DNA of 64,000 bases from Thalia democratica (lineage: Eukaryota). Below the pieces are notes generated by a model that searched no databases, had not been told where the DNA came from, and saw only the letters and a list, made by a program, of their open reading frames with translations. The DNA lies in NCBI GenBank assembly GCA_965202585.1, contig OZ241826.1, positions 26,846,001 to 26,910,000 on the forward strand, written 5' to 3'. Positions 10,111 through 61,049 of this stretch are shown one piece after another; the stretch's first letter is position 1; each line of letters opens with the position of its first letter. The position numbers and the translations under genes are program-made.

Positions 10111-10140
10111 AAATCGTAATGTGTTTGAAATAAAAAAAAT

Positions 10141-10236
10141 CATCAACGCTTCCGAAGACCCGGGAGAAGCAGAAAAGCACAACAGGATACTGACCAGGCT
10201 GCGAACCGACCCGGAGACGCATTTCTCGCTCGTCCA
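10141..10236 (+). pseudogene. Internal fragment of a paralog of the 51210 ORF (INASEDPGEAEKHNRILTRLRTDPETHFSLV)
   Basis: About 90% identical to the reverse complement of ~51583-51678. Confidence 0.85.
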
Positions 10237-10651
10237 TATGGATAGAAAACTACCAGTTTTAATATTGATGAAGTAATTTACAAGTTAGTCAAGTTAATAT
10301 CTAAGAAAAATTACAACTTATCATTTAAAAAAAACTTTCAAGCTTATACATATTTTCATATATGAAAAATAGTTTAAACAAATACTTAAAAGATATTGTT
10401 TTAATTTTGATATTCCGCTGTGAAAAAAAACTGTCGAAAATTAAGTTTAAGGCGATCTTTAAGTTTTACTTTTTATTTAAGTAGATCCATAACTGGTAAG
10501 CAAAAAAAAAGGTACTTATAAAATTAAATGAAAAATAATATAGTATTAAACAAGGCTTCATTTACTTAAACATCTATGATTTTTAAACAAACAGTAATTT
10601 AAAAAATTAAGTGACTGTTGTTGTTTTCAATATTCATTAACTTTTTTGGTT

Positions 10652-11495
10652 CAATGATAAATTTTTAAAATTTTATTACAATACAATGTTTCACTCGTTT
10701 AAAAACAACGAGATCTTCAGTTGTTTAAAATCTGTAAAAATTTATGTGATAACAAGTAGGAAGACATTAGGCTAAACTTGAAATAAAAGAAGTTAAAAAG
10801 AAAAAATGTATAACAAAAAACTGAGTAAAATCTAATTAAAACCTATAGTTTAAAGTTATTAGCGTATGATGATTTTAATGTTGCTAGGCTAAATTTAGGA
10901 AAATGCACGTTACTTAATAATTATACAATCTTAAAACTTAAACAAACAAAAAAAAAATATACAATAAAAAATAATTCTACTAACATTTAGTGGCCTTGTG
11001 AAATCTTTAGATAACTAACAAAGAAAAACATCTCTTTAACTAAACCTTTAAGTTAAGTTTACTCGTTTAAAAAAATTTGGCTATTGTATTATGACGTATT
11101 TATATAGTGGTTTAAGTACTTGTATAAATTAAAATAGATATTTTTTTATCAAAACGCTCTTAAGTTTTGAAATAAAGCTTCTTGAAGTGTATACAAGAAC
11201 ATATTAACTCGTTCCTTTTATTTAATGATGTTTCCCCGTCAGCGTTCGCTATTTCCATTTTTTCATAGGAGCAGGTCCTGCAGATTCTCTGCGGTTTCCT
11301 TATGTGTCCGATGTGGTGTAAAATTTCCCATTTGATGTTGTAGTTAGTGTTGTTGCGTTTTAGTTTCCAAATGTTGCGTCAGTTTTTAAACGAGTGAAAC
11401 ATTGTATTGTAATAAAATTTTAAAAATTTATCATTGAATCATTCTCCTTTTTAAGTCGAGAACTTTGATTGCAACCTTTAAAGCAAAAAGTACGC
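10652..11495 (-). mobile_element. 5'-truncated Penelope-like retroelement (GIY-YIG C-terminus + 3' region with hammerhead-like motif)
   Basis: 11378-11160 reads IWKLK..YNIKWEIL..ICRTCSYEKMEI..SLNKRNELICSCIH, the C-terminal pattern of PLE GIY-YIG endonucleases; 13-bp direct repeats aacttttttggtt at 10639-10651 and 11496-11508; absent at the paralogous site near 50.6 kb. Confidence 0.8.
10677..10720 (-). ncRNA. Minimal hammerhead-ribozyme-like core in the Penelope-like 3' end
   Basis: CTGAAGA-t-CTCGTT(loop)AACGAG-t-GAAAC-attgtatt-GTA; stem II perfect, stem III 3 bp, stem I not evident. Confidence 0.55.
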
Positions 11496-13185
11496 AACTT
11501 TTTTGGTTGCTAATAAAATAGTTTCAGTTCCGATTATGAGTTACGTTATTAGATTTAATAAATAAGAAGTTATTTTAATAAAAAGTTTCATCCGAAGTAA
11601 TTTTTTAGCTACAAAAAAAACTAAAACTTATTTAAAACAAGTTGTAAGTACTGATAAGTAATCTTGTGACAGAAACAAGTCATTATAAATTTAAATTAAA
11701 TTAATTAATAAATTAAAAACCTTAGAAAAATTAAAACAAATACCAATTGAAAATCTGATAGATGAAAAAAAATTTCACGAATTTCACCAAATTTTTTTTT
11801 TTTACGATAATATAGCTGAATAAAATTAGAATTAATTAAGATATCAGTTTTTATTTCAAGTATTACGTTAAATAAGTAAAAGCACAGTTTTAGCCAAAAA
11901 ATTCAAAAAAAAGTTTTTAAATAATACTTTTTTATAAAGTCCTTATTTATATTGCGCTTAAATTAAGTTTTAGTTTTTGTACTTTTTATTCTTTTTTTTT
12001 TCAATCTTTTTATTTTAATATCTATTTTTTGTTTAACTCGTTTGTACTTGAACTCAAATTATTTTGTAATTCTACATGAAACTATTTTTAAGTCGAAAAA
12101 TAAAAACTCAATAAAAAAGATAATTTTAACGTTTATTGCCTTTTATTTGCTAAAAAGTTAGTTTTTTGAAGAATTATGTATGTTTAAAACAAAAAAACTA
12201 ATAAGCTTTCCTTCTAAGAAATATGATTTTAGGTGTGGACTTTCTAAATTAAATTCAAAATGCCTCCTTCTAACAACCATTAAATGTATTAAATAAAATT
12301 TTATAGGCCTGAACGAAATTTTTCAATCTTTGGTAGGTTAACAATGTTTTAAAGAATACATTTAGTTTCGTTTACTTTTGTTCTAAAAGAGGAATTTTTA
12401 AATGAAAACTTTAATGGTGAAACTAGCTATTGAGGACACGAAACGTTTTATCATTTAATAACTTTTTTTCTCGCTTGCACTTTTGATATTTAAAAAACCC
12501 GTTTCATCCAAATTGGTACCGATCACTTATTGTAGACTTTCCTAAACTAAATACCTTGCTTGGCTCTCACAGATCAAAACGTTTAAAAATGAAACCTTTA
12601 GAATAGTTAGAACCGACAGATTAAAAAAAAAATTGTTTGTGAAAATTATGCTGGCTTAATGTACAAACTTTAAAATAATCTCAATGTACTTAGTTTCATA
12701 TGTTTTTTAACGTCTAAATATTTAAGGAAATAATGATGTTTTATTTTGGATGTAAACAGTCTTTAAATTACTCTTATCATAAAAAATGTTTGTGATTTTT
12801 CTGAGGACTGATGTACTCATTTAAGCACTCATATAACTTCAAAATAGTCTAACAAATAGTCTTCAGTTCAAAAACTTGTTTATTATTATACAGTATTCAC
12901 CAAAACTAAAAAAGCGAGTATTTCACAGTACGAAAAAGTTTGATAAAGCAAAAAACAATTACAGCAATTATTACGTCACACTCAAACTTTAAAACAAAAT
13001 TACAGTGCCGATACTTTTAACAGTAATAAACAAAGATATTCTTATGGCTAGCCATACAAAAGGCTTGTACACACATATTCACAGTAAGGAGGTGCTATTA
13101 ATTAAGTTGTTTGTGGTAATTGTGGATTGTAAATTAATTTTAGTGATAATTGTAAACTATTTAATCAACATAATAAATTTTATTT

Positions 13186-20409
<7,224 letters not shown>

Positions 20410-21047: not shown

Positions 21048-21906
21048 GGGAATATGGGGGTCCATTTTTTTTTTACTAAAAATAACATTGGATTATATAT
21101 GAAAGCTACAAGCTACAAAATTTTTATAGAACTAAAAATCCTTATTTAACTTTTGAGATATTGTAGTTTTTATAAAAAGTTTCCTATACAAACATAAAGA
21201 ACGCAAATTTTTTGGGGTTAAGTTTAAAAATTCACTAAAAATCTATACTCTCCTTCATTTTTTGAGCTAGAGACCTCAAACTTTCAGAAACGTTCCATTT
21301 ATAGTTAAAAAGACTTTGAGTTTTGGAACTTTTAAAATATTAGAAAATAAAAATTTTAGATTAAAATAACATGTTTTAAAAATTTAAAGAACTTTGAAAA
21401 AGTTTCAAAGAGATAAAGTACACACATATACACACTATAAATCACTAAAAATCTATCTCTTCCTACGTTTTTTGAGATAACTATCTCAAACTTTCAGGAA
21501 ATGTTCTTTGCAATATTTAAAAAATTTGATTTGAAGAAAATTTGAATTTTTTTTTTTAACTAAAAGATAAAATTTTTATGACAAAAAAATAAAAAAAAAA
21601 CTTTTTTTTTGTTAGCTTATTTTATGACAATTTTTTTTAAATATTGCAAGGAACACTCTCTGAAAGTTTGAAGTATTTATCTCAAAAAACAAAAGAGAAG
21701 ATAGATTTTTAGTGAAATAGTCTTTTTTTTTTTTTTGATTTGCGCCTTCCATAAGAAACCTATCGTTGCCTCCGACTTTGACCAGCAATATCTCAAAGAT
21801 CATTTTAATTTTTTTAAATCTTTAAGAAACATTTTGTAGCTTAGTTAAAAATCTATAAAATAAGATCAAATCGTGAAAAAAGTGATTTACCCCTCCCACT
21901 ATGCCA
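21048..21906. mobile_element. Older, reverse-oriented copy of the same MITE family
   Basis: Degenerate ends; internal blocks shared (ctcaaactttcaggaaatgttc, gcctccgactttgacc). Confidence 0.7.
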
Positions 21907-22267
21907 TTAAAACTTAAAACTTTGTTTCGTTTGTGTGAAAAACACAATGATGATTTTAATACACTAATAATTCTGCAACAAATTCAGTTACTTAATAATT
22001 ATAATAAAAAATATTTTTAATTTAAAGTAAAACAGATTTCAACTATTTTTTTACCAATTTTTTACTTTATTAAAAAGTTTATTTAAAATTTGGAGCGGTT
22101 TAAAACTTAGATAAAAACTTTTAACAATAACTGATCATTTCATTGCAACTGTGGAAGAATTGTTAAACAAACTTGTTGAACTCTTTAACTTGGTTGCCTA
22201 TATTTTGAAATTTAGTTTTAAGATGTAATACAAAGCATGTAGTCTTCTATTTTTAGATTAAAGTTAA

Positions 22268-22945
22268 GGCCATAGGGGGGGGGGGTCCACTTTGTTTTTT
22301 ACAACTTGATCTTATTTTGTAGAATTTAATCTGAGCTATCAGACACTTTTATTTGCTTAAAAAAACTCAAAGTAATTTTTGAGATATAAGCGATCAAAGA
22401 AAGGGCCAATAGGTTCCTTATGGAAGGCGAAAACTAAAAATGCAAAAAAAGACTATTTCACTGAAAATCTATCTCCTCCTTCATTTTTTGAGTAATTTTT
22501 CTCAAATTTTTACAGAATGTGTATCATTAAACTTTGAAGAGATCTATTGTAGGATTTTTTTTAATTTTGAGTAAAAAAAAAAATTATTGTCAAAAAACTA
22601 CCCTTTTTTTTAGTTTTTTGTGGATAAAATTTTTATTTTTCAAAATTTTAAAAATTCCAACATTCAGATTCTTCAAAATATAAGGAACATTTCCTGAAAA
22701 TTTGAAGTCTCTAGGTCAAAAAATGAAGGAGGAGATAGTTTTTTAGTGAATTTTAAAATTTCCAAGAAAATTGACCCCAAAAAATACCTTTATGTTGGAA
22801 AATTTTTACAAAAAGTTAAATATCTCAAAAGTTAAATGATATTTTTGAGTTCTATAAAAACTGGCTTATAGTTTGTACTTTAAGCTTTCATATAAAAGCC
22901 AAAGTTAATTTTAGTAAAAAAAAATGTTGGACCCCCCCTATGGCC
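22268..22945. mobile_element. TTAA-flanked MITE, same family (GGCCATAG ends)
   Basis: TTAA|GGCCATAGGG ... CCCTATGGCC|TTAA; internal homology to 18355-18883. Confidence 0.88.
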
Positions 22946-34008: not shown

Positions 34009-35267
34009 CTGAAATTATATTGAATTTAATGTTTTTCTAACTATTATTTTAGGCTAAAAATCAATGTTTTATGCTAACTATGTTTAGCTTGAAGTATACT
34101 TTGTTTTAAACAAGATTTAAATACATAGTGAGAATAAAATTTATTTATGACAAACTAAAGTATTCGATTGATTATGTTTTACAATATCATAATCAATATA
34201 AAAAATTGAAAAGATTTAATTGCTTTATATTGTTTAATGAAAGCAATTATATATTTAAGTTTTATTAATTTATGATATATAACTCAATTTATGTACTTAT
34301 AAATATAAACTTTTAGCCAAAAATTATAGTTAAGAATACATCAAATACAATATAATTTCAGTTAGATATTGGTGCAACATTAAACTAGATAATTATAAAA
34401 TTCACATTAGCTTTTATGTAATAAAATATATATAGGATTGCCACTTACTAATGAGCTCAGAGAAATTTTAACTAATAGAAAATCTCAGGGAAACTCACAA
34501 AAATTTTAACTTTTTAAACTTTGGGAAACTCAAAGCAGTTTTAAGATTTTTAAGAAAACCTCAGGAATTTTTTTAAAATAGTTTATTAAAAATATTTAAG
34601 GATTTGAAAAAATACTCTGGTAAGGTTAAGGTTACTCACAGAAGATTTTATGACTTAAAGAGTAGCAAACAAGTATATATTAGGATTTAATTTATATAAT
34701 TTCTTGAAGTATTAGCTTATAATATTTACAGTTATAGTTAGTTTTAATTAAGTTCAGGTTAAATGTATAAAATAATGTTCACAGGGTAATTTAGGCCTCT
34801 GATTGTTTTTAAAACTTTGTTTTGGATCTAAAACATTGCTTGAACAACAGATATCTAATTTGCCACAAGAACTTTTTTTAAGGGTATAGGAGGTTAAAAG
34901 CCAATCACTTCCATGTTTTTGTTTATTTATATAACTATGATTCTTCCATTAAATAAGCAAAAGGAAATTACAGTTGAGGCCAGGGGGTTACATACATGTA
35001 TGATACTCACTAAATTTTTAAAACATATATGTTTTATATTTAAAGAGTATCTTTAAGAAGTACGCATCAGTGTAAGGTACGCACAAATTTTTCAAAATAT
35101 CTATCTATTACACTCAAAGAGTATCTTTGAGAAGTATGCATTTGTGTAAGGTAAGAATAAACTTAGGGGCATAGGGCGGTTAAAACACTTTTTTTTGAAA
35201 TAAATATTAGTTAAAGGTCAGTTATTCATTAAGAAAAAGTGTAACCCCCCTGTATAAATAAATTTAG

Positions 35268-35913
35268 GGGCATAGGGGGGTTTAAACACTTTTTTCGTAA
35301 TGTGATCTTGTTATGTATAGTTTTTGTTAAGCTACAAGTTGCTTTTTACAGACTCTAAAAATTCAAAACATTTTTTGAGATATAGCCGGTCAAATTCGGA
35401 GGCAACAATAGGTTTCATATGGGAGGCACAACTAAAACAGCAAATAACTAGAATTCACTAAAGATATATCTCCTAGCATTTTTGAAATTACTATCACAAA
35501 TTTTCAGGAAATGTTCCTTGCAACATTTGAAAATACTGGTGCAAGGAATTATTAAAATTTTTAAAAATATATGTATAAAATAAAACAATTTTTTTTTGTT
35601 TTTTTTGTTATAATATTTTTGTTTTTTTTCGTAAAAGACTTTTCTAAACATTGCAAGGAACATTTCTTATAAATTTGAGGTAGTTATCTCAAAAAACCTA
35701 GGAGAAGATATATTCTTAGTGAATTCTAGTTATTTGCTGTTTTAGTTGTGCCTCCCATAAAGAACCTATTGTTGCCTCCGACTTTGACCGGCTATATCTC
35801 AAAGATTGATTTGAATTAATTTTTTAAATCTGTAAATAGCATCTTTTAGCTCAGTAAAAACTATATAAAATAAGATCACATTCTAAAAAAAGTGTTTTAA
35901 CCCCACTATGCCC
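35268..35913. mobile_element. Symmetric fold-back MITE of the same family (long inverted arms)
   Basis: GGGCATAG ... CTATGCCC|TTAA; arms pair over roughly 250-300 bp. Confidence 0.85.
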
Positions 35914-36056
35914 TTAAACTTATCCTTATCTTACACGGATGTGTACTTCTTAAAGATACTCTTTGAATGTAATAGATAAATAATAATTGGCTTTTTATTT
36001 ATGTTTTATAATTATATGTGGTTACTTACATAATTATATAAATAAATAAAAATATG

Positions 36057-39386: not shown

Positions 39387-42300
39387 TAAAAAGTAACAAA
39401 TTAAAAAGTATATAAACAAGACAATAACTAGTTTAAATAGTTTACCAGGTTAACTGTTTGATGAACGTAAAAAAAAATATTATGCTTTAAAACGTTAAAA
39501 AATTGAAAGAAAAATTAATTTAAAACAAATGTAACTAGTAGAAAAAAAACTAACTATGTGTTTTTAAACTAACACAAATTTAGTTGTAAGTATTTGTTTT
39601 TTATAGTTTGAATGAAGCTAGAATTTTATCATTTCAATAAATTAAGTTTAAAATTTTTTCAAGTTGTATATAAGCTCACTTTATATAAATAAAATTATTT
39701 TTTTTTTATAACACAAACGCACTTACAAAGTTATGCATACATTTTCTAATTACTACTTCATTCTATTTTGCTATCATCAAAAAAAAAAAAAACGCTTAGA
39801 TAGAATAATGTAAAGTAGAGTTTTCATTAGCTTTATTGTTTTTTTTATTCTCAAAAAAAGTAACATTTAACATTTTGAAAAAAAAAAATTTAGTTACTTT
39901 TTACATTTTTCATTTATTTCAAATAAAAAAATTTAAACAAACATATTATTTATTTGGTATCTTTATTTAGTAGAATAAGCGTTCATTACTTTAATATTCA
40001 TAGTTTAAATAAACTGTTAACGTAAGTCATCAAGATCTAAAGTTATCAAATATATAATTTTTGAAAGTCAAAAACAAAAGTTAGACTATTGATATAAATA
40101 AAAATACAATATATTAAGTGTAACATTAATTAAACAAAATAATTTAACTTGAAATATTTAAAAAAAACGCAATTAAATAAAGTAAGATTTATAAATAAAT
40201 TTTGTTCAAGAAAAAAATATTATCGTAACTAAAAAGACTTTTGCACAAACTTTTATTTAGAAAAACATTTTTCCAAAAAATTTTTTAATCAAAACACTTA
40301 TGCTAGACGCTTTCTTTTCTCACTACCTTATGTAAAAATGAATAAGACTTCAAATAGTATTAACAGCTCAAGCAAAAGGTCTGTATTAAAAAAAAAGATA
40401 AGATAGATTCTATTAGTTTAGCATCTATTTAAAGCAATGAGTTTCAAAACAAGTTCTCTTTGAAAAATTTTCAACCAAAATATATGTGTTACTAACAGTA
40501 TCAAAAAACTATTAAATTGTTATATTTAAGTATAGTAATTGAAACATATTTTTATAAGCTAAGGAAAAGTATAACAGCATAAACGTATGTCTATTCAAAC
40601 TTATGAAATTATTATGAAATTGATAATTTAACAATTTTAATTTAATCTGTTCGACTATAAATAAAAAGCACAATACACATAAATAAAAACATTTTATGTT
40701 TAAGGATTACCATACTTACAAACGTTTGTCATAGTCTTTATTAAAAGTAAGTTTGTGCAACTAATAATGCAAGAACTGTTACAATGAAAACCTCCTTTAT
40801 TGTTAACAACTTGTTTTTCAAACACAACCTCAATAACAGTTTTGTTTAACCAAAACTTTTTATTTGTCTCATATAATTCAACAGTTGAGTTTACACATTC
40901 AGTAATGGAATAATTATTGTAACGCAAGATTTCTTTATTTATAATCAACTTGTTTTTTAATGATAAAACTGATAGCTTTAATCTATTTGAAACTTATTAC
41001 TTATAAACAAGCTATTTGTAACAGGTAACTTTAATCAATCAATAATGGAAGAGTTCTTACAACGCAGGGAAACCAACCGAGACGCGGCATTTTTCCCGCA
41101 AGTAATTGCCGCAAGGATATTCGCTTCTAAAAAATAGGCGGGCAAACAAATCGTAAGTTTTAACGAGTTGAAGTGGGGACAAGTCAGCCAGTACAGTAAT
41201 GAGAAGATCGAGTGTGAACGAATCGAGCCGGTTTCGAGTTGCTGTGTTTTGTGTGGTATCCGACACGATTCCGAACTGATCCTCCCGAAGACTGCCGCTC
41301 TGAGAGAAAAAGAAAATCTAAGTGGTAAACAGAAAACTGTAGATGAAGATTTGAGTGCTTGTGAAAGTAGCTCATCTATTTCCAACGTAATCAATCTGCG
41401 AGAAAAAGAACGTTTGAGTGATGAAAAGCAAACTTATAAAAAATATTTGGGTGCTTGTGAAAAAAGCTCACCTATTTTCGACGTAAGTGATGAAAAAACT
41501 ATTGATTTCCAAGAAAAAACTGTAAAAGAAGATTTAAGAGCTTGTGACAATAAAAAGTAACAAATTAAAAAGTATATAAACAAGACAATAACTAGTTTAA
41601 ATAGTTTACCAGGTTAACTGTTTGATGAACGTAAAAAAAAATATTATGCTTTAAAACGTTAAAAAATTGAAAGAAAAATTAATTTAAAACAAATGTAACT
41701 AGTAGAAAAAAAACTAACTATGTGTTTTTAAACTAACACAAATTTAGTTGTAAGTATTTGTTTTTTATAGTTTGAATGAAGCTAGAATTTTATCATTTCA
41801 ATAAATTAAGTTTAAAATTTTTTCAAGTTGTATATAAGCTCACTTTATATAAATAAAATTATTTTTTTTTTATAACACAAACGCACTTACAAAGTTATGC
41901 ATACATTTTCTAATTACTACTTCATTCTATTTTGCTATCATCAAAAAAAAAAAAAACGCTTAGATAGAATAATGTAAAGTAGAGTTTTCATTAGCTTTAT
42001 TGTTTTTTTTATTCTCAAAAAAAGTAACATTTAACATTTTGAAAAAAAAAAATTTAGTTACTTTTTACATTTTTCATTTATTTCAAATAAAAAAATTTAA
42101 ACAAACATATTATTTATTTGGTATCTTTATTTAGTAGAATAAGCGTTCATTACTTTAATATTCATAGTTTAAATAAACTGTTAACGTAAGTCATCAAGAT
42201 CTAAAGTTATCAAATATATAATTTTTGAAAGTCAAAAACAAAAGTTAGACTATTGATATAAATAAAAATACAATATATTAAGTGTAACATTAATTAAACA

Positions 42301-43717
42301 AAATAATTTAACTTGAAATATTTAAAAAAAACGCAATTAAATAAAGTAAGATTTATAAATAAATTTTGTTCAAGAAAAAAATATTATCGTAACTAAAAAG
42401 ACTTTTGCACAAACTTTTATTTAGAAAAACATTTTTCCAAAAAATTTTTTAATCAAAACACTTATGCTAGACGCTTTCTTTTCTCACTACCTTATGTAAA
42501 AATGAATAAGACTTCAAATAGTATTAACAGCTCAAGCAAAAGGTCTGTATTAAAAAAAAAGATAAGATAGATTCTATTAGTTTAGCATCTATTTAAAGCA
42601 ATGAGTTTCAAAACAAGTTCTCTTTGAAAAATTTTCAACCAAAATATATGTGTTACTAACAGTATCAAAAAACTATTAAATTGTTATATTTAAGTATAGT
42701 AATTGAAACATATTTTTATAAGCTAAGGAAAAGTATAACAGCATAAACGTATGTCTATTCAAACTTATGAAATTATTATGAAATTGATAATTTAACAATT
42801 TTAATTTAATCTGTTCGACTATAAATAAAAAGCACAATACACATAAATAAAAACATTTTATGTTTAAGGATTACCATACTTACAAACGTTTGTCATAGTC
42901 TTTATTAAAAGTAAGTTTGTGCAACTAATAATGCAAGAACTGTTACAATGAAAACCTCCTTTATTGTTAACAACTTGTTTTTCAAACACAACCTCAATAA
43001 CAGTTTTGTTTAACCAAAACTTTTTATTTGTCTCATATAATTCAACAGTTGAGTTTACACATTCAGTAATGGAATAATTATTGTAACGCAAGATTTCTTT
43101 ATTTATAATCAACTTGTTTTTTAATGATAAAACTGATAGCTTTAATCTATTTGAAACTTATTACTTATAAACAAGCTATTTGTAACAGGTAACTTTAATC
43201 AATCAATAATGGAAGAGTTCTTACAACGCAGGGAAACCAACCGAGACGCGGCATTTTTCCCGCAAGTAATTGCCGCAAGGATATTCGCTTCTAAAAAATA
43301 GGCGGGCAAACAAATCGTAAGTTTTAACGAGTTGAAGTGGGGACAAGTCAGCCAGTACAGTAATGAGAAGATCGAGTGTGAACGAATCGAGCCGGTTTCG
43401 AGTTGCTGTGTTTTGTGTGGTATCCGACACGATTCCGAACTGATCCTCCCGAAGACTGCCGCTCTGAGAGAAAAAGAAAATCTAAGTGGTAAACAGAAAA
43501 CTGTAGATGAAGATTTGAGTGCTTGTGAAAGTAGCTCATCTATTTCCAACGTAATCAATCTGCGAGAAAAAGAACGTTTGAGTGATGAAAAGCAAACTTA
43601 TAAAAAATATTTGGGTGCTTGTGAAAAAAGCTCACCTATTTTCGACGTAAGTGATGAAAAAACTATTGATTTCCAAGAAAAAACTGTAAAAGAAGATTTA
43701 AGAGCTTGTGACAATAA
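39387..43717. repeat. Exact tandem duplication, 2164-bp unit
   Basis: Constant offset of 2164 (ORFs 40700/42864, 41168/43332); 3-bp TAA microhomology at junction 41551-41553; no differences seen. Confidence 0.95.
41045..41560 (+). pseudogene. Truncated duplicate of the 43209 orphan ORF
   Basis: Identical to 43209-43717 including the TAG (41135-41137); ends NKK* at the duplication junction. Confidence 0.65.
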
Positions 43718-48098: not shown

Positions 48099-48644
48099 GG
48101 GCATAGGGGGGGGTAAACAACCTACTAAAACGGCAAAAATAGACTATTTTACTAAAAATCTATCTTCTCCTACGTTTTTTGAGATAACTACCTCAAACTT
48201 TCAGGAAATGTTCCTTAATATATTTAGAAAATTCTGTCAAAAGAAATTTTGAAATAAATAAAAAATAAAAAATTTTTATAAAAAATAAACAAAAAAAAAC
48301 AGTTTTTTTTTGTTTTTTTGTTATAAAATTTTTATTTTTTAATTTTTTTAAATTCTGTTCCGACAGAATTTTCTAAATACTGCAAGGAACATTTCCTGAA
48401 AATTTGAGGTAGTTATCTCAAAAAACGTAGGAGGAGATATATTTTTAGTGATTTCTAGTTATTTGCCGTTTTAGTTTGCGCCTCCCATAAGGATCCTATT
48501 GTTGCCTCCGACTTTGACCGGCTATATCTCAATAATTATTTTGAATTTTTTAAATCTGTAAAAAGCATCTTGTAGCTTAGTAAAAACTATATAAAATAAG
48601 ATCAAAAACCAAAAAAGGGTGTTTACCCCCCCCCCCCTATGCCC
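48099..48644. mobile_element. TTAA-flanked fold-back MITE inserted in the duplicated tektin intron
   Basis: TTAA on both sides; absent from the paralogous intron near 15960. Confidence 0.88.
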
Positions 48645-48739
48645 TTAACTTTTATTATGTATTTTGTTGTATTTAACTATCACTAAGCTAGTTTATAAAA
48701 AAAAAAAAAACAAATAATAAATAGTATTCAACGAAATAG

Positions 48740-48834: not shown

Positions 48835-51209
48835 GTTTCTATATTTATTTATACTTTTTATATATTTACAATAACAATGTTAGTATGGTGTAAGTGATAA
48901 AATGGCTGCAATGATGGTGGCTCAAGTTTTAGGTTTAAATACTTCTTTTATGATATATTTCAACTTGTATTTGGTTTTATGTACTTAACTATTGTCTTTT
49001 AGTATCAAACCAAGTTATTTGATAGAAAACAACTTATGATAGATGTTAATCTACAAATTCAATACAAAACTACCCAAACAAAAAGACTGCTAAGAGTTAC
49101 TTTCAGCAAAATTTTTTCTGTTCCATACTGACACAAATTGTAAAACTAAAATCAAGATTGCAAGTAAACTGATAAAGACGGGAAAACAAAAAACTACTGC
49201 TAAATGTTTAAAGTAAGTTATATTTGTGTTTAAATGAGTGCATAAATCCTCAAAAATTATCACAAACATTTTTTATGATAAGAGTAATTTAAAGACTGTT
49301 TACATCCAAAATAAAACATCATTTTTTCCTTAAATATTTAGACATTAAAAAACAAATGAAACTAAGTACATTGAGATTATTTTAAAGTTTGTACATTAGG
49401 CCAGCATAATTTTCACAAACAAGCTTCTAACTAATCAGATGATTACATTTTTAAACGTTTTGATATGTGAGAGTCAAGCAAGGTATTTAGTTTAGGAAAG
49501 TTTACAATAAGTGATCGGTACCAATTTGGATGAAACGGGTTTTTTAAATATCAAAAGTGCAAGCGAGAAAAAAAGTTATTAACTGATAAAACGTTTCGTG
49601 TCCTCAATAGCTAGTTTCAACATTAAAGTCTTAAGATAAAAAATCCATTTTTAGAATAAAAGTAAACAAAGCTAAATATATTCTCTAAAACATTGTTAAC
49701 CTACCAAAGATTAACAAATTTCGTTCAGGCCTATAAAATTTTATTTTATACATTTAATGGTTGTTAGAAGGAGGCATTTTGAATTTGTTTTAGAAAGTCA
49801 ACAACTAAAACCATATTTTCTTAGAAGGAAAGCTTATTAGTTGTTTTGTTTTGAACATACATAATTCTTCAAAAAACTAACTTTTAAGTAAATAAAAGGC
49901 AATAAACGTTAAAATTATCTTTTTCGTTAAGTTTTTATTTTTCGACTTAAAAATAGTTTCATGTAGAACTTTCAAAATAATTTGAGTTCAAGTACAAACG
50001 AGTTGAACAAAAAACTACGATTAAAATAAAAAGATTTAAAAATTAGGAATAAAAAAGTACAAAAACTAAAACTTAATTTAAGCGCAATATAAATAAGGAC
50101 TTTATAAAAAAGTATGCTACCAAGCTAATTAAAAAATTTTTTTTTGAATTTTTTGGCAAAAACTGTGCTTTTACTTACTTAAAGTAATACTTAAAATAAA
50201 AACTGATATCTTAATTAATTCTATTTTTATTCAGCTATATTATTGTAACAAAAACAATTTGGTGAAATTCTTGAAATTTTTTTTTCATTTATCAGTTTTT
50301 CAATTGGTAATTGTTTTATTTTTTTTAAGGTTTTTAATTTATTAATTAATTTAATTTAATTTTTAATTTATAATGACTTGTTTCTGTCACAAGATTACCT
50401 TTATCAGTACTTACCACTTGTTTTAATTAAGTTTTAGTTTAAATGTTTTTGGTAGCTAAAAAATCACTTCGGTTGAAACTTTTTATCATAATAAATTCTT
50501 AATTATTAAATCTAATGACGTAACTCATATTCGGAAGTGAAACTATTTATTTGTAACCAAAAGTGTTTAAAGAATATTGACTTTTGAGACTATTAACTTG
50601 AATATTAAGAACAATAGTCACTTAATTTTTTAAATTACTATTTGTTTAAAATCATAGTTGTTTAAGTAAATGAAGCCTTGTTTTATACTATATTGTTTTT
50701 CATTTAATTTTAAAAGTACTTTTTTTTTTGCTTACCAGTTATGGATCTACTTAAATAAAAAGTAAAACTTAAAGATCGCCTTAAACTTCATTTTCGACAG
50801 TTTTTTCTAAGCGCAAAATCAAAATTAAGACAATATCTTTAAAGTATTTGTTTAAACTATTTTTCATATATGAAAATATGCATAAGCTTGAAAGTTTTTT
50901 TTAAATGAATAGTTGTAATTTTTCTTAGATATTAACTTGACTAACTTGTAAATTACTTCATCAATATTAAAACTGGTAGTTTACTATCCATATGGTTGTT
51001 TACAAATTAAAAGTTATTGATATAAAAAACAACTTAAAACAACAAGCAACCGAAACTTAACACAAATTTTACAGCCAATGTCGACTTGCTAATTTTATTC
51101 AGGTTTTTTAAAAAGAAAATAGGATGTTTATGCAGGCAGTTATGACATCAATATAATTATTTAAACTTTTTTAACTTGTTTTTACTGGGTTGTTGTCTGT
51201 TTGCTGGTG

Positions 51210-51770
51210 TTATACCTTGTGTTCCTTGCCCTTGTTTGATACCATTTGAACCTTTACTTCTTTCTTTATCATATTTTCTAACTGCGCTGAATTCACTACA
51301 ATTACCGTTCCTGCTTCATCTGTTTGTACTGCTTTTGCTTCTTGCCGTGGTTGTCCTGCTGCTTCTTGCCGTGCTTGTGCTGCTGCTGCTCCTTGCCGTG
51401 GTTGTCCTGCTGCTTCTTGCCGTGCTTGTGCTGCTGCTCCTTGCCGTGATTGTCCTGCTGCTGCTTCTTGCTCTGGTTGTGTTGCTGCTCCTTGCCGTAA
51501 TTGTCCTGCTGATCCTCCTTGTTGTGTTTTATTTCTCTCTTTTACCACCTCAATCTCTTCTTCAACCACTTCGTACAGCTTCTGGACGAGCGACATATGC
51601 GTCTCCGGGTCGGTTCGCAGCCTGGTCATTATCATTTGGTGCTTTTCTGCTTCTCCCGGGTATCCGGGAGCGTTGATGAAGTTCTGCAGAAACACCCTCC
51701 GTTCGTCCCGGAAATCGTCGCCTGACAAAATCTCTGTGAAGGCACGAAATACGTTTTCAAACCTATTCAT
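51210..51770 (-). CDS. Intronless orphan protein (186 aa from ATG 51770): helical N-domain + Q/A/G/R tandem repeats
   Basis: GC-rich ORF in AT-rich context; ATG preceded by a tgtgtgcag acceptor-like sequence; homologous fragment at 10141-10236. Confidence 0.75.
   Translation of the reverse strand: MNRFENVFRAFTEILSGDDFRDERRVFLQNFINAPGYPGEAEKHQMIMTRLRTDPETHMSLVQKLYEVVEEEIEVVKERNKTQQGGSAGQLRQGAATQPEQEAAAGQSRQGAAAQARQEAAGQPRQGAAAAQARQEAAGQPRQEAKAVQTDEAGTVIVVNSAQLENMIKKEVKVQMVSNKGKEHKV
51340..51510. repeat. Coding minisatellite, alternating 21-27 bp units (AQARQEAAGQPRQG)
   Basis: Repeated cttgccgtg(g/c)ttgt(c/g)ctgctg. Confidence 0.85.
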
Positions 51771-54700
51771 TTCTGCACACACAACGAACACACACAGTGA
51801 AATTTAAAACCCTTTCAGAAAATGCATCATTTATACTTAAAAAATCAACGGTATAGTCACGTCACAAACAAACGTTAAGTTTTCATTAACTTTTCAACAG
51901 GATTTGTTTTTTTTTAACCAAGGTTTAAAAAAAGACTGCTTTTCGATGTAAGTTCTTTTACTGTAAGCCGCGGGTTAATTTTCATAGACAAAGTTCAGAA
52001 TATTTGTAGTAATCAATAAAAAAACATTCTTTGAATCACATTACTGATACATAAGCAATAATAAAGTACAGTAACCTCTCGCTTATTTACGCACATTGTG
52101 TTAACATAAAAAAAGTGCGTAAAGATACGAGAGGTACCAAATATACTTACTACATCGGCTGTTTTTTGATAATGCTTCTAGTTAAAAGAAGACTTTTAAC
52201 AAATTGTTTACTTTATTTATATAAGTTAAAACAAAAGATAAAACTATACATATTTAAAAAAATAGGATTTAGATTTATATAAATAACAATACTTTTAGAA
52301 AAACTATACTAATTTTAATAAAAAGTAGATTTTATGTTTATCGTTATTTATATGAATTTCAATTCAAGGGCTTTAAACCAATTTTAATCGAGACCATCAG
52401 TTTTAACGCGCAGTTGTGTTCTTCCAAAGCTGTAACTGGTGCTGGTTAGCATTACTGAGAATTGAAGGCAACCTGCGAAAAGTTTCAACGCTTGCTGTGC
52501 AGAGCAAATGTTACAGAAGAAGAACAACTTAAACAAAAAAAAAACGTCAAATGAAGATTAGTGAAACGTTTAGAAAAATACAATTGAGATTTTTGTTAAG
52601 TGTAGACTCTTTACTTATCAAGTATCACTGCTACTTTTTGCTAGGAAGTTTCATTAACTTTTTTTTTAGATGTTTACTTGTATATAGGGCAAGAGTGCTG
52701 TAACACTTAAGTGAGATATAAACTCTCATCATTTCATTATATCTTCATTGTTTAACGCAGTCATATTTCTCTAGAGTTTTAATTTAATCTCTTATTATTA
52801 ACAAAATTTACGATATACTAAGGTATAACTATATGTTTATCAATTAGTCAAAAAACATAAGTTTACAAAATTTAAAGATATAGAGAGGTGAGTTAGCATT
52901 TTAAAACATATTTTAAATTAAAAATATACAATTAAGCTAATTTGTGCAATATTAAAAAAAAAGAAAAATTTTTGAGTTTTTAGAATTCTAATATGCGTAA
53001 CTAAACGAGAGTGCGTAACGTCATAAGTGCGTAAAGATGCAAGAGCTTACTATTCATTTTCAAGCTAAGAGTCTAAATGTATGTTTTTGCCGCTATTTTT
53101 TATACTGTCTTAAAAAGTATGATTTTAGCTGAAAAGTTTACAGAGGCCCGCAAGTTGTTAAATTAAATATTAGCACAGCGAAGCTTCTAATACAAACAAT
53201 ATTTTATTTGAAATGTTCATGTCAATTTTTTTTCTTTAGTTTTGTATAAAAGTTTGTATACAATTGATAGATTAATTTTTTTAAATGACTTAAATATACA
53301 AACGATAAGGCTACCTGTAATACTGTATCAGCTACTTGAGTGATATACATCAAATACGCTCTAAGTATAACTCAAGTTAATTTTGTTTCGTAGTGTGAGC
53401 AATCTCGTTGACAGCTTTTTAGTTTAAATAATCACGTTGTTGTGCAGAACAAAGTTAATATGATTCATGGTAGAAGCGTTTAAAACAACGTAGCAGTCAG
53501 TTTAAATTTTACCAGTTTGCTCATCTGTTTGTCTCATTGCGTGGCATATTCACTCACTGTATATTCAATTGTGTCTTGCGGTCCGGTTGTTTTTTATTTT
53601 AGCTTGTTTAATTTTTAAGACGGGAAACATATGAAGTTCGGCATCAGTTATTACCTCATAGTTTCGCCCGCACATGTTCATTTTAAGCTACCAGTCAACT
53701 GGGGGTATTTTATTATTGCCAAAGTATTCAATGCGTTTCTAAAAATTTTAACAGAACAGTGAACTAATTAGACTTAAAACATAAGGCTGAAAGTTGTAGA
53801 AAGAGTTTTCCCAAACTCGCTTTAGTAAACGCCCCAGGTTGAAGAATACAAAAAAAAAACGGTCGGCGCCACCCCTTTTCAAAACCCAAAAATACCCAGT
53901 GTAGCTCACCGGTTGTGCCCAAGACCTTTTGCCTTTCGACCTTTACCACAAACCCGAGAACAACTGGTTGAGTTTCGGTTTTCCCGTGAAACGAACCGAA
54001 ACGCCCCCTTGAGTCCTCTTTATGCGCCCCCTCCCCCCAATCGGTCCTTCTCCTTGGCCCGTTTGCAATTTGTTACCATCTCACCCGCCGAGACGGACCA
54101 CTTTCGGAATGCCCTACTGTAGGGTGTTTGCTGCAACTGTGTAAGTTGGTGTTAAGCATGAGGCCGACGGGTTTACGTCGCCTTATACTAAAAAAATACT
54201 ACAGCTCAACGTCAACCAACAAGCTGTTGTTTTTTCATAAAAACTTACATGTTAAGACAACTGATTAATAAAATTAAAAAAAAGTTACGTGTTAAAAAGG
54301 TTGGGTGAACGAGGTTTTGTCATTACCGATTAGTAACAAATTGCTTTTGTTTGTTCAATTTAATGCAACTTTATAGATTGGAGGTTTGGTTGTTGAATAA
54401 AAAAGTTTTCCACTTTGTATATGGAGCACAAACATACATTTTAGTTTTTTACTTTTTTGCCTGACTTGACACCTTCGATGTTGCTTGATATAAAAAAATA
54501 ACTTTTTAAAGCTTACTTGTAAAAAAAGCTCTCATTTAAATATGATCATGCACTATACTAAAAAATGTTTAAGATTATTTGTGATTTTATAAATTAAGAA
54601 CCGAATATTATGTTAAGTCAAAGTTTAAGGGATAGATGACATTCGCAAATTGTAATTAACCTAGTTAATGAGTAATTATTGCATTTCAATCACGAAAATT

Positions 54701-55694
54701 GTATAAAATTTGCGTTTGTCACTATAGTATTATACTATTACGGTATTTATATATAAATATTTCTTACAATAATCAAAAATAAGTTCTAAACTTTTCAAAC
54801 TTTGGCGAAAACTTGTTTTTGATGCATATAAAACTAAGTACTTATATTTCTGCTAAAATAGTGCTGACTTAATTCAGTACAGTGCTACCTCACTTACCCG
54901 GCTGTGTTGGCCAAGCTTTTTATTAGTTATGACCGGATAAGAACGAAACGTCCTTTTGAAATAGTTTACTTCATTAATATTATACAAAGCATATAAAAAA
55001 GTGCATTTAATTATCCGCTAACTTATTTTATCTTGAACTTTTTCACAAATACCAAAAAATTCAAACGGATAGAAAATAAGCGAAACAAAACTTTGTAAAA
55101 ATAAATCTGACGAATACGAATTGCATCGCGAACAGTTTACCTAATATCGGAACTCTTTCTTAAAAAAGGAAGTACGGGAGCTTGTCTGACGTGAATTCCT
55201 TTCACAAAACCCACCGAAACAGACAAACACTTCCCGGTGCGACTTCCGGTCTTTTGTTTCATCTGGCCGGTTGAGTATCGATGTCGAGATGTGTCCTAGC
55301 AAAATCGTTATATACAACCAGGTTCCATCGCAGTTAACTTCTTGATATTCGGAGTGGCCCTCGATCTGGTGTTGTTAAGTTTGTAAAGCCAAAAAATTGT
55401 AAATTAAAACATCAAGTTTGGTTTAAAGAAATTATTACGCTTTTATAAACTGCTTGCTTAGTTATTGAAATCAAAATATACATGTATATAAATAAAAAAA
55501 AAAGATTTTAGCTGATCTAAATTAATCTACTTCTGAACTAAAATTGACCAAATAAGCGAGGAGACGGATAAGTGAGGAAGCACTGTTTTAAAATAGTATT
55601 ACATCTTAGATTGGTCCAAAAAATTTAAAGCACATTTTAAGATCACTAAATCGAATAGTACATTATATAATGGGTCAAGATGTTAAAGCCTAGA

Positions 55695-58223
55695 ATGGGG
55701 TCGGAAAATTGCGGCCCGCAAGCACGTTTTTATTCTGGATAGAATGCGGCCTGCGACCATGTTAATGTTGCCCTCCGAACAAAATATCTTTAAGTCAATT
55801 TCTTTTAGATAAAATGATGTAATTGATCATTACAAGTCTTTGAAAACGTCCAAATCTAATGGTAAATGTTTACTGGTTAGGCTTTTGAATGTGAAAAAGA
55901 CAGATTAGCTTTCTTGCAGTGTTTTTTTCTCATTTCAGATAATAACTTATTTCTTTCAACACCAACTGGTGAACTATAAGTTTTAAAAGTACTTGGATTC
56001 AGTATGTTATTTATGAAACAAATTTTTAATAAATTAAGTATTTGCGAATATTTTCTTTTATGTACAAAAGTAATGCACAGAACTGAACTAAAGTTTGGTT
56101 TCTTTGAAACTTAGGTGTTTTGTTTAGCTTGTAAATTATACCTAAGTTATAATAACACATATCTCAAGTACGTATTATATTTAAAAGATCTTAACAAAAA
56201 CACATAAGGTAACATTTTTTCTTTTTTGATTTTGAGTTGTTTTGATTTTTTACATGAGTTTTTGTGGTCTTTTAATTAGTTCTTATGCACACTAAGGTGT
56301 TTATAAACAGTTTTACATTTTAGTTTTCAGCTATTTTTTTCAGTAGTAAATACCCCAAAAGCACCCTGTGTAAAGTGATTTGAAGAAATTTTCATCTTCG
56401 CGAAATTCGATTTTTTATAACTCACTACAATTCAAACTGTATGGGATCTAAAAAATTCGACCTTAAAGTTTTTATTTAGATTATTTATTTTATAAGTGGC
56501 AATCATCATGTAAACACTGGTGCCCAATTTAATAAAACTTAACGAGAGATTTATGGTGACACTTCTTGAGATTTAAACAAAAAAAAAATTCAGTCGAAAT
56601 ATTTTTAATTCTAAAATCTCCGACTAAGTTTTGATTACCAGTTTTGACTTTTTTGCTTTGAAGAGTGGTAAGGAAAACTTATGATGTATGTCATTTTAAA
56701 TTTACAGCTTTAATTTTAAATATATATAAAACTTTAAGCCCTGAAATAGCTATAAATTAAAATAATACTTATATTTAATTTGTACACATATAAGTTTAAA
56801 AAACGCACACTCGCTTTAAAGGCAACTGCATTTAACCCTGAAAACTTTTTCTGAAGAATTTAAATCAGAGTTGCACTAAAAAACCTGGAATTTTAAATTT
56901 TGAAAAAAACCTGGAACTTTGAACAAAAACCACTAAAAAACCTAAAATTTTAAACAACTTTTTGATATTAAATATAAATATTTCGATTTAACACAAAAAA
57001 CTTATCGTATAGATAAAAACTTTCTGTCATCATCAAAAAACTTTTTATTAAAAAAATAAATTTAAAGCTATACGATATCTTTTCAATCTCGTTAAACTAC
57101 TTAAAACAGTTTTTTATCTTAAAATTAATTTCAAACTAAAAATAGACCCTAAAACGTGTAATTTTAACAGCCTTGAAGAAGTTTTGAAAAAATGGAGAAA
57201 ATTTGCCAAAAATGTTTGGTAACCCTGTTTAATGAACCCACACTGATTCATGCTAGGTTTTAGTCATTGAGACTAACTTTCATATGCCTCATAAGAGTGT
57301 TTGCCATACTATTCTACGTTTAAACTTTGTTTTATAAAACACCGATGTACTTTTAATGTCTTGCTTTGTAATAAAGTCATTCGAAACTAACTTTACTAAG
57401 AATAAGGTTGTATAACAACACAGTCTTAATGGTCTGTTTTTGTTTTCAAATTCTTTCTAAGGGCTAAAAACAGCACTAAAAAATTCTTTATTTTACATAT
57501 TCTATGAATACCACACCGAAAAAACGAGCTTTTACAAAAAAAAAAAATAATCTATAAAAAAAAGCTATTTATTTCTATGGTTAAAACTTACATAAATAAG
57601 AAAAAATATTCTGTTTCATCATGTAAACATTATTTTATTATAGATTAACTTTAATCGATTGAGTATTTATTAAAAATCATAGTTTTTAGTGTAGCTATAC
57701 ACTTAGATGTTCTTAAACTTGTCTTAAAATTTGTAAAAAATAGGATATCTCATACTAGTTTGAAGCTTTTTTCGAACGATTCAGGCTGTTTTATTATTTT
57801 TACTTAAATTAAATTAACAAAATCTAATTTCTACTGACTAGTTATTAAGGGTTTGAGAAAAATCCATGCTTTTATCTTTCTTTAGTTAATAAAGTATTAA
57901 TATCTTGTCATAGGGTCGCCGCCTAGTATTAAACGTACTAAGCTTTAAAAACAGTAAATACTTTATTAAGACTTAAGTATATTAGTCAAAGTAAGTTTTA
58001 GTTCAAAAATATGTAAAATTTAAAAAAACCTTCTGTATTTAGCTAAAAGTCATTTTATTTAGTTAAGTGAATAAAAGTAAGACTTTGAATGAAACTAAAA
58101 CAGTGTCCTATTTGTGCGACTAAAATAAAATATAAAGATTATTAAAATGTGACTTAAACTAAAACTGCGTCCCGCGACGATTTTGAAATTTGGACCGCGA
58201 GCATTAATTGCCTGCCGACCCCT
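55695..58223. mobile_element. hAT-like non-autonomous element (GGGGTCGG ends)
   Basis: Left ggggtcgg..gcggcccgc, right tgccgacccct; flanked by agcctag on both sides (55687-55693, 58224-58230). Confidence 0.55.
56866..57227. mobile_element. MITE with CAG(A/G)GTT ends nested in the hAT-like element
   Basis: cagagttgcac ... ggtaaccctg. Confidence 0.5.
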
Positions 58224-59227
58224 AGCCTAGCGGTTTACACAACCGAAGCTTTCTGTTTATTTGTTAGTTAATTTAAAACGAAAATGTATATTTAAACTTA
58301 GTTTATATTATGTTAAAGTCGGTCATTTGTAAGTTTTAACTCTTTGTTAGTATTACCTTCTCAACTAGCACTATTTTAGCCCTGGTGGTGGTAAATTTAC
58401 GACTTTAGAAACATTCTGAAAATAACTTTATCGAAAGCTTTACTAACAACGTGTTACGTATTTCAAAATTACAAAAAAAACATTAAACTAAACTCTTAGT
58501 AGCGTTAGTAGAGAAAAAAATCTTACTTTGTACATTACTAACTGTAGCTTAAGTTTCTACTTTAATTGTAATTAAGCGCTTCGAGTCAAGAATTCCCAAA
58601 CTCATTTTCGTAAACGCCCCCTTGGCGGAGTCTTACGTAATATTTATTCATTGCACTTATTAGGGTAATATTGCCCACTTGGCACTTATAAGGGTAATAT
58701 CTATTTTTTTCAAAGATGCTTTATAATTACAAACAATAACTAATGTTTTACTTACTTATGAGAAAAAGTAAAACAATCAAACTTTAGTAAAGTTGTAATA
58801 AAAAGTTGAAGTGTTGTTGTTTTGTTAGAATTTCAGTTTGAAAAAATAAAAAATAAACTGAGCTTGCTTGATATAAAAAGTTTAACCTTTTAAAGTTAAG
58901 CTTTGAATGTCTATCATTGTGTCTTTTACTGTTAAAATTAGTTACAAACAACATTGAAAAAAAATTATAGACTTTAACTTTTTGAAAGCTACCTTTAAAA
59001 AATTAATGAAAATCATTAATGAAAAATTTTTTGCAAAAAAACATAAAATACAAAGTAATATATCTATAAGTTTAATTTTAAGACTACAATTTTTATGTTT
59101 ATTATTATTTTTATTCTTAATATGTTCAGGTGTTTAGTTTAAAACCATTTTACATTATAAAAACTGCCAGACTGTATTGTCTTTTTTAGGAACATTTATT
59201 TTTATACACATTTAAAAAAATTTGTTT

Positions 59228-59620
59228 CTATCTTTGTTCAAGGTTTCCTTGGTTTGCCAAGCGTTCATTTTCTAACACTAGCTGTTCTTTATACCATTCG
59301 AAAAACTTCCTGACAAGCTTTTTTTTAAACTCGTTATCATTATGCAGCTTTCCCATCACTTCTGTCAAGGTGCGATCTTTGCTTACTAAAGAGTCATAAA
59401 TTTCTGCCACTTGACTTATCGTTGTTCCGAAGGCTAAATTTAGCCTTATCGTTGTTATCCAATTACCCGTATACTGTATGAGGTCTCTTTTCGAAACATC
59501 TTCTATGTCAATTTCTAGGTCAAAATCTGGTTGATTTTCAGGTGGTTTTTCCGCATTTTCTTTATTTGTGTTTCGCTTAATAGCACGTTTATTTTTAGAT
59601 GTTCTTTCTACTGTTTCCAT
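59228..59620 (-). CDS. Intronless orphan protein (130 aa from ATG 59620), putative distant homolog of the 51210 ORF
   Basis: Open frame with protein-like composition; 11/33 ungapped identity to the 51210 ORF motif. Confidence 0.65.
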   Translation of the reverse strand: METVERTSKNKRAIKRNTNKENAEKPPENQPDFDLEIDIEDVSKRDLIQYTGNWITTIRLNLAFGTTISQVAEIYDSLVSKDRTLTEVMGKLHNDNEFKKKLVRKFFEWYKEQLVLENERLANQGNLEQR

Positions 59621-59835
59621 TTTAATAAGTAAATGTACACACACAATAAACAGAAAGATCAGATATTTTTATGCAGGCAAATCGTTAAAAATATTTTGTA
59701 TAAAAAAAGCCGTAAAGTTACGTAATAATTGTTTAATTTATTTACTTTTTGCTGAATTTGCAAACCGTTTTAAACTAGTTGAACACATACTCTTAAAATC
59801 TCACAAACTTTACTTTGGATTTTTAAACCTAAAAG

Positions 59836-60073
59836 ATAACTGACTCATTTTCGAAAAATATTTATTTATTTATTAATTTCGTTTAGCTCTCTTCAGAATA
59901 ACATTGCTAAAAACTATGAATATTGTAGAGTAATTTTAGTAATATATAATGAATTTGAAAAGTCTAAAACTAAAATTACTCTACAATATTCATAGTTTTT
60001 AGCAATGTTATTCTGAAGAGAGCTAAACGAAATTAATAAATAAATAAATATTTTTCGAAAATGAGTCAGTTAT
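59836..60073. repeat. Perfect inverted repeat: 105-bp arms, 28-bp spacer
   Basis: 59836-59940 is the exact reverse complement of 59969-60073. Confidence 0.95.
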
Positions 60074-61049
60074 GTTTGAACTTTTTAATTAAAACCAGTA
60101 CCAAAACCAAACTATTCAAACCTAAAAGAGTCTTCATAATAATTTCAACTAAAATTCTTATCCAATTTGAATCATACAAGCTTTTAGCACATTTAAAAGT
60201 AGTACTGTTTTTCAATGAAAAGTTATAATCTGCAATAATCAAACCTCAATTAAAATTAAATTCAGACTTTAAATAATAAAAGTACAGTTCGAAGCTGAAA
60301 TAACTATAAAAAACTATAAACCAAGAAAGTTCACAAAAGGTGTATAAAGCGAAAAACCTTTTGTGTAAAAGTTTTAGTAAAATAAATACTACTACAACTT
60401 TAGCATTTAACAAAAATTGAAATAAAAGTTATTTTTGATTATTACAGCTTACTATTTTAAATACTGAGATAAAGTTTTGTTGTTATACTATTACCGTAAG
60501 CATCTATAGAGTTTGTATTTAATGATAGTCGTTTTTATATTTTTTTGTTAGCTTTCAAGGATTTTTTAATTTATTGTTTTGATTATAACAAAGGTTTGAT
60601 AACTTCACTGCCAATGAAGCCTTACAGAGAATGTCAAGAATTTTTAAAATGTTTTGTTTGTTTCAATAAAAATATATTTGCAAGTTTTAAGTATGGAGCT
60701 CTAAAAACTACTTTATAAAAAAAATCTCAACATAAACACCAAGTGCATCGAAAAATAACACTAGTAATGACTTTAAAATTTTATACAATATAAAATTAAA
60801 CTTTAAACCCTAAATTTAAAACCTAAGTAATACCAGTTATGTACAAACTTTATGTGTATCAACCAACGAAACATATCATCATCATTTTATTAACTATTTT
60901 TCGAAACAATTTTGCATATTTGTTTAGCACAAAAAACGTAGCAATAACGTTTTATCCTCAAATTCTTTTTAAATCGTTTTGTGTACTTTTTAGTTTAAAG
61001 ATGGCAATCAAAGTTCTCAACTTAAATAAAAGGAGGATGATCAGTTATG

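Follow-up and report, generated by a model that had tools for sequence, protein, structure and literature searches.

Two transcribed orphan genes at one locus of a Thalia democratica contig, and a short helical likeness between their predicted proteins

The described class closest to the two genes treated here, ORF1 and ORF2 (open reading frames 1 and 2), which lie 7.5 kb apart on the minus strand of a 64-kb stretch of Thalia democratica DNA (contig OZ241826.1, positions 26,846,001 to 26,910,000; hereafter the window, numbered from 1 to 64,000), is that of the taxonomically restricted genes of animals. Like these, ORF1 and ORF2 are small, apparently single-exon and without distant homologues, have a putative TATA promoter and a ratio of nonsynonymous to synonymous substitution rates (dN/dS) near 1, and show length variation driven by repeats; the class is a descriptive one, however, rather than a family, and carries no word on function. 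Many orphan genes encode secreted peptides, whereas a reading of the N-termini of ORF1 and ORF2 reveals no evident signal peptide. Among solved structures, the best PDB match to a profile of the ORF2 family is 9HNH (E 1.1e-4), the de novo computationally designed alpha-solenoid A_1_1 (bioRxiv 10.1101/2025.04.23.646631), whose repeated 30-residue helix unit aligns to profile positions 78-107, inside a motif that ORF2 shares with ORF1. As a computed design, 9HNH cannot be a relative, and its helix units stand in tandem whereas ORF2 has a single one. The sole PDB match of the ORF1 N-terminal region (residues 21-61) is to ribosomal protein S15 (1AB3 and others), also a small helical protein, but at E ~0.9 and 13 bits this match is not significant. 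Within Pfam, DUF4709 (PF15821) weakly matches the helical region of ORF2 (E 0.081, 13.8 bits) and P0006, a relative of ORF2 (E 0.63, 10.9 bits), with no match in the relatives P0003 and P0004; both scores are far from the gathering score of 27 bits, and many unrelated matches are equally weak.

The first-pass annotation of the window had placed ORF1 and ORF2 in one unrecognised family on account of an ungapped helical motif of 33 residues, with a fragment at 10 kb as a third member. We favour another reading, to which we give a probability of roughly 0.55: ORF1 and ORF2 are genuine genes of the host, a marine animal, and separate from each other, the likeness between them is more likely a resemblance of helices than a sign of common descent, and the fragment at 10 kb is the decayed remnant of an ORF1 duplication. 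On this reading each gene consists of one exon preceded by a TATA box, is transcribed and encodes a small, mostly helical protein. As it stands, the result adds two transcribed orphan genes to the annotation of an animal genome. The features of the two genes are the following.

51210-51770, minus strand: ORF1 coding sequence, 186 amino acids, first ATG at 51770, TAA stop at 51212-51210
51519-51770, minus strand: predicted N-terminal helical region of ORF1, residues 1-84 (AlphaFold2, low confidence)
51534-51632, minus strand: 33-residue motif in ORF1, residues 47-79, predicted helices 3 and 4
51324-51516, minus strand: minisatellite with a 24-nt (8-residue) unit, encoding the Q/A/G/R-rich tail of ORF1 (repeat analysis)
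51213-51350, minus strand: C-terminal segment of ORF1, residues ~141-186, predicted beta-hairpin and helix
51829-51835, minus strand: TATAAAT box, ~60 nt upstream of the ORF1 ATG, read from the sequence and a putative promoter element
59228-59620, minus strand: ORF2 coding sequence, 130 amino acids, ATG at 59620, TAG stop at 59230-59228
59261-59359, minus strand: 33-residue motif in ORF2, residues 88-120, predicted helices 3 and 4
58762-59676, minus strand: unspliced ORF2 transcript as seen in contig L003, 915 nt, 98.3% identity, no gaps
59676, minus strand: probable ORF2 transcription start, 55 nt before the ATG, where collinearity with L003 begins
59692-59702, minus strand: TATA-like element, 16-26 nt upstream of the ORF2 start site, read from the sequence and presumed functional

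The likeness itself had been read correctly. Both peptides of the motif had been translated exactly and their 11 identities in 33 residues counted correctly, and the motif does stand before the Q/A-rich tail of ORF1 and near the C-terminus of ORF2. Its ungapped BLOSUM62 score is 52, or 53 when the alignment is extended to 37 residues. Much of what can be said about this score weighs against a mere resemblance of helices and favours an alternative in which ORF1 and ORF2 are anciently diverged tandem paralogues that share a four-helix domain of ~85 residues, with only helices 3 and 4 still alike, and so make up a novel lineage-restricted family; we regard this as a possible explanation whose chances fall somewhat short of even. 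Shuffled sequences reached the score in none of 1000 whole-protein, 3000 domain and 5000 motif-only, composition-matched trials. The pairwise P is ~1e-3 or lower: gapped Smith-Waterman alignment gives P ~9e-4, and with hydrophobic and polar positions held fixed the count is 5 of 2000. The shuffle test suggested for the motif thus has a divided outcome, composition shuffles never reaching the score but the result becoming borderline, at P ~1e-3, once the helix pattern is kept. Among the 831 six-frame ORFs of the window, ORF1 and ORF2 are each other's best non-self match by score (53, against 38-39 for the next) and also by profile hidden Markov model (HMM; E 0.015 and 0.15, calibrated by pattern-preserving decoys to 6e-4 and 5.6e-3). 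The profile alignment by hhalign has the same register (P 0.0023), which is identical in all 10 cross-family pairs. The predicted helices point the same way, since all four coincide between the two proteins at a constant offset of 41 and an aligned Asp marks where helices 3 and 4 part in both models (predicted local distance difference test score, pLDDT, 42-46). Finally, neighbouring genes on the same strand with like architecture, both apparently intronless, both with TATA-type promoters and both orphans, are the expected trace of a tandem duplication.

Several results nevertheless make common descent doubtful. The most telling control is the designed protein 9HNH, which has no possible relationship to either gene and yet matches ORF2 better than ORF1 does, so that helix likeness of this kind can arise without descent. 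The hhalign probability is 12.6%, and composition-adjusted BLASTP of ORF1 against ORF2 did not report the motif alignment. No similarity was detected between the two proteins beyond the 37 residues, the first half of the putative domain included, and alignments of their promoters and 5' untranslated regions, and of their 3' flanks, did not rise above shuffles. An all-against-all diagonal scan of the 831 ORFs returned a handful of pairs scoring at least 53 without an identified repeat link, in agreement with a Karlin-Altschul estimate of ~4 such pairs. When ORF1 is replaced by its orthologue P0001, the score against the ORF2 family drops to 40-48 (P 0.02-0.06), and the orthologue pair no longer has 4 of the 11 identities (counted by hand from the alignments), which shows no special constraint on the shared residues. 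Both structural models, moreover, are of low confidence. The sequence of the ORF2 helix is close to that of an idealised amphipathic helix, and we consider a resemblance between such helices the more likely source of the motif than common descent, by about 60:40. The claim of one family is therefore retained only as to the likeness (P ~1e-3), which spans 37 residues and weakens to P 0.02-0.06 with P0001; a common family is not established. More generally, an identity of ~30% between helices rich in E, K and L needs pattern-aware controls, as the example of a designed protein outmatching the proposed paralogue illustrates. A true relationship between the genes would make them a minor case of a lineage-restricted family born by local duplication and diverged until a single helix pair is recognisable, although even then the relationship would offer no functional lead.

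AlphaFold2 models were built from shallow alignments and reach a pLDDT of 46 for ORF2 and 42.5 for ORF1. They place predicted helices at residues 3-15, 24-32, 40-53 and 55-84 of ORF1 and at residues 44-60, 64-78, 85-94 and 96-129 of ORF2, and so agree with the earlier description of the motif as helical, both proteins being predicted all-helical around it. Structural comparison goes no further than this: both models have four helices, but at such pLDDT values their tertiary structures are not comparable, and a Foldseek search of the PDB with the ORF2 model returned nothing. If the models are taken at face value, the motif would be the last two helices of an ~85-residue four-helix region in each protein, its 33-37 residues forming a short helix, an Asp-containing break and a long amphipathic helix rich in E, K, L and V. 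A short helix followed by a long amphipathic helix of this composition is typical of helical-bundle or coiled-coil contacts. The motif might accordingly pack against the two preceding helices or pair with a partner helix, and its role could be self-association or the binding of another protein. ORF2 consists of a basic N-terminal tail, an acidic linker and the helical C-terminal region of ~85 residues; K, R and N abound among the first 25 residues, and this may indicate a nuclear or nucleic-acid-associated location.

Both proteins are orphans. Word-indexed protein searches with ORF1 and with ORF2 found only the relatives P0001-P0006, of which P0003-P0006 belong to ORF2. When 1.84 billion representative proteins were searched exhaustively with HMMER, the ORF2 family recovered its own orthologue cluster only, and a word-indexed search with residues 1-82 of P0001 returned P0001 itself only. 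In Pfam, at E up to 10, the two ORFs and their relatives had only sub-threshold and mutually inconsistent matches, and in PHROGs only matches at noise level; no relatives of either family were found among IMG/VR viral contigs, no loci of either among JGI metagenome contigs, and no natural solved structure was matched significantly by either ORF in a PDB sequence search. The description of both as unrecognised and lineage-restricted is borne out by these results, the relatives being near-identical or syntenic and coming from marine metagenomes. Judged from sequence comparison, ORF1 and ORF2 are orphans at a fixed host locus, confined to this organism and its close relatives.

The evidence for transcription is most complete for ORF2. 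Its relative P0003, 98% identical to it, is encoded on a JGI contig of 923 nt, L003, which covers all of ORF2 at 98.3% identity and is collinear with the genome without gaps, so that no intron is visible in ORF2. The first eight letters of L003 do not match the genome, and we take them to be the remnant of a template-switch oligo. The JGI record is presumably metatranscriptomic, an assumption that draws in part on the oligo remnant at the 5' end of L003; with that remnant at its end, L003 would be a cDNA contig and transcription would start at ~59676. For ORF1, the peptide P0002, which stems from a marine metatranscriptome-derived catalogue, agrees with ORF1 at every one of the last 36 aligned residues and keeps its reading frame through the repeat tract. 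Expression had been named as a check on both genes, and it is seen over the whole of ORF2 and at the C-terminus of ORF1; the earlier description of both as intronless also stands, since both are apparently single-exon. A GT that overlaps the last codons of ORF1 is a candidate splice donor, and the 3' end of the ORF1 exon could be either the stop or this donor.

Four contigs from marine metagenomes (L001, L002, L004 and L005, two of the four labelled Tara Oceans) are collinear with the window at 51.3-54.4 kb and 54.1-60.7 kb, and their substitution divergence from it in the non-coding flanks is ~9%. Collinearity at this divergence indicates that the contigs represent this chromosomal locus as it stands in a related organism, where both genes keep their order. 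It also bears on the suggestion that ORF1 and ORF2 might be the cargo of a mobile element or of an integrated virus. Three observations could be read in that way: ORF1 stands at the edge of a duplicated block, a foldback-type insertion lies upstream of ORF2, and both proteins are orphans. However, the collinearity of 51-61 kb in the related contigs implies a fixed chromosomal position, and the foldback insertion is separate from ORF2 and does not occur in the related contigs L002 and L004. Neither family has relatives in IMG/VR, the PHROG matches are noise, and a Pfam scan of the 42 longest ORFs of the window yielded only Tektin and weak noise, with no transposase, integrase or capsid-like ORF. 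We therefore dismiss the idea of a mobile or viral origin as highly improbable, and return to host genes as the better account of the locus.

The foldback-type insertion (59837-60114) lies ~160 nt upstream of the ORF2 start site and consists of 116-nt arms, 97% complementary, around a 28-nt loop, with an imperfect 15-nt direct repeat on its flanks; this structure suggests a miniature inverted-repeat element.

In comparison with the related contigs, dN/dS comes to 0.86 in ORF2 and to 0.80 in the N-terminal 80 codons of ORF1, over which ORF1 and P0001 have 71% amino-acid identity. Coding divergence is 12.8% against 9.4% in the flanks for ORF2 (Fisher p 0.055) and 14.6% against 7.6% for ORF1 (Fisher p 0.012), the latter flank value being that of the 300 nt upstream of ORF1 in comparison with L001. 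The rates of both genes are thus close to that of the non-coding DNA around them. Purifying selection was sought through dN/dS and through the comparison with flanks, but dN/dS is not clearly below 1 and coding sequence is not more conserved than its flanks; the dN/dS check on the motif proteins is to this extent unfavourable, with a partial exception in residues 81-130 of ORF2, which bear the motif and have a dN/dS of 0.55, on few sites. The most variable part of ORF2 is residues 36-80, where amino-acid identity is 51% and in-frame indels of 24 and 6 nt occur.

These values, together with a neutral simulation in which the ORF1 N-terminus remains open in 28% of runs, weigh against function at the protein level, and they are what would be expected if one or both ORFs were transcribed but young or decaying frames that drift neutrally, with a helical look that comes from E/K/L-rich composition. 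The instability of the ORF1 locus fits with this as well, since it has left a duplication relic and has another 3' end in L001, as does the ORF1 tail, which is frame-shifted between relatives and ends in a C-terminal segment that P0001 lacks. We nevertheless hold a lack of protein-level function in one or both genes to be improbable. A frame of 130-146 codons in DNA of 26-33% GC is very unlikely to arise by chance, on arithmetic from base composition and the ORF census. ORF2, moreover, is open in four diverged relatives, across ~13% divergence and despite the 24-nt and 6-nt indels; in the neutral simulation, with indels not counted, it remains open in 12% of runs, which multiplied by the chance of two in-frame indels gives a joint P of ~0.01. 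This amounts to moderate sequence-based evidence that the ORF2 frame is maintained; the dN/dS of 0.55 in the motif half likewise speaks against neutral drift. For ORF1, the 28% of runs shows nothing on maintenance, although the metatranscriptome peptide assembly keeps its frame. Alternatively, the same rates could reflect tandem paralogues with a new four-helix domain of ~85 residues, restricted to one marine-animal lineage and under diversifying selection, because coding divergence exceeds that of the flanks, the middle of ORF2 is hypervariable and the tail of ORF1 varies in length and frame; this seems to us rather unlikely, if less so than neutral drift.

The variable tail of ORF1 deserves separate mention. 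What had been described as a defined Q/A-rich tail is a minisatellite tract, open in several frames, and the homologous tract of the syntenic contig L001, which encodes P0001, is read in another frame that yields a Q/D/N-rich tail; at the amino-acid level, then, the tail is not conserved. The C-terminal segment beyond it has no counterpart in P0001, and L001 leaves collinearity with the window at this place. Right after the P0001 stop, L001:2427-2472 jumps to window positions 48924-48973, 2.4 kb further on, so the two organisms differ structurally in the 3' part of ORF1 and in the region downstream of it.

The fragment at 10 kb belongs to a larger structure, in which two features can be listed.

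10140-10236, plus strand: truncated ORF1 relic, residues ~31-63, 90.7% DNA match
10140-16579, strand not applicable: one arm of an inverted segmental duplication, the other arm being 51679-47506

A DNA match of ~90% to ORF1 had been proposed here as a third family member, and the match exists: 10140-10236 aligns to 51679-51583 at 90.7% over 97 nt. It holds, however, just the first 16 of the 33 motif residues and no start codon. The start given for it earlier, 10141, is out of the coding frame, and the frame that matches ORF1 is the one open at 10112-10273 on the plus strand. The relic is the outer end of the inverted segmental duplication, whose blocks are 74-94% identical with internal deletions and whose arm at 10 kb lacks a counterpart of 50996-51582 and of all sequence upstream of the fragment. 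From this arrangement of matching sequence, 10140-10236 is best described as a decayed duplicate of ORF1 and not as an independent third member. With 92.8% identity to L001 and 90.7% to the ORF1 of the window itself, the relic is slightly nearer to the former.

Upstream of both genes, short sites of a regulatory type can be read. A cyclic-AMP-response-element-like site, TGACGTGAC, lies at 51856-51864 on the minus strand, ~20 nt upstream of the TATA box of ORF1, and has an exact counterpart at L001:1886-1894; a palindrome of the TTACGTAA type stands upstream of ORF2 (~59714-59722), at a position similar to that of the TGACGTGAC site of ORF1. The two may reflect a shared regulatory logic or a coincidence. 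Between the genes, 53498-54368 (L001:19-897) is the most GC-rich stretch of the neighbourhood and is 81% conserved with L001. It carries overlapping open frames on both strands at 53764-54122. Rfam has no match to it, and the long ORFs that were scanned contained no recognisable Pfam family.

The window as a whole is AT-rich, with a GC content of ~26%, and contains no assembly gaps; scans of its full length with Rfam and for tRNAs gave no matches. One further gene is recognisable in it.

16680-19750, minus strand: Tektin-1-like exons (Pfam Tektin match)

Four open stretches on this strand, at 16.7-19.7 kb, match Pfam Tektin positions 49-271 in order, and the closest solved structure for one of them is a tektin chain of PDB 8SNB, with mammalian Tektin-1 next. 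Further Tektin-1-like exons probably lie on either side of 16680-19750. The Tektin matches indicate that the DNA of the window comes from an animal.

Elsewhere in the window, a tandem duplication of 2167 bp (39387-41553 and 41551-43717) is perfect, at 100% identity, and is either very recent or an artefact of assembly; it contains open frames rich in S, K and E that run on to 44374 on the plus strand. A dispersed repeat family of ~500 bp, with 65-82% identity between copies, occurs at 17918-18748, 21056-22755, 35254-35917 and 48124-48658, and its copies match one another in both orientations, so the unit is palindromic.

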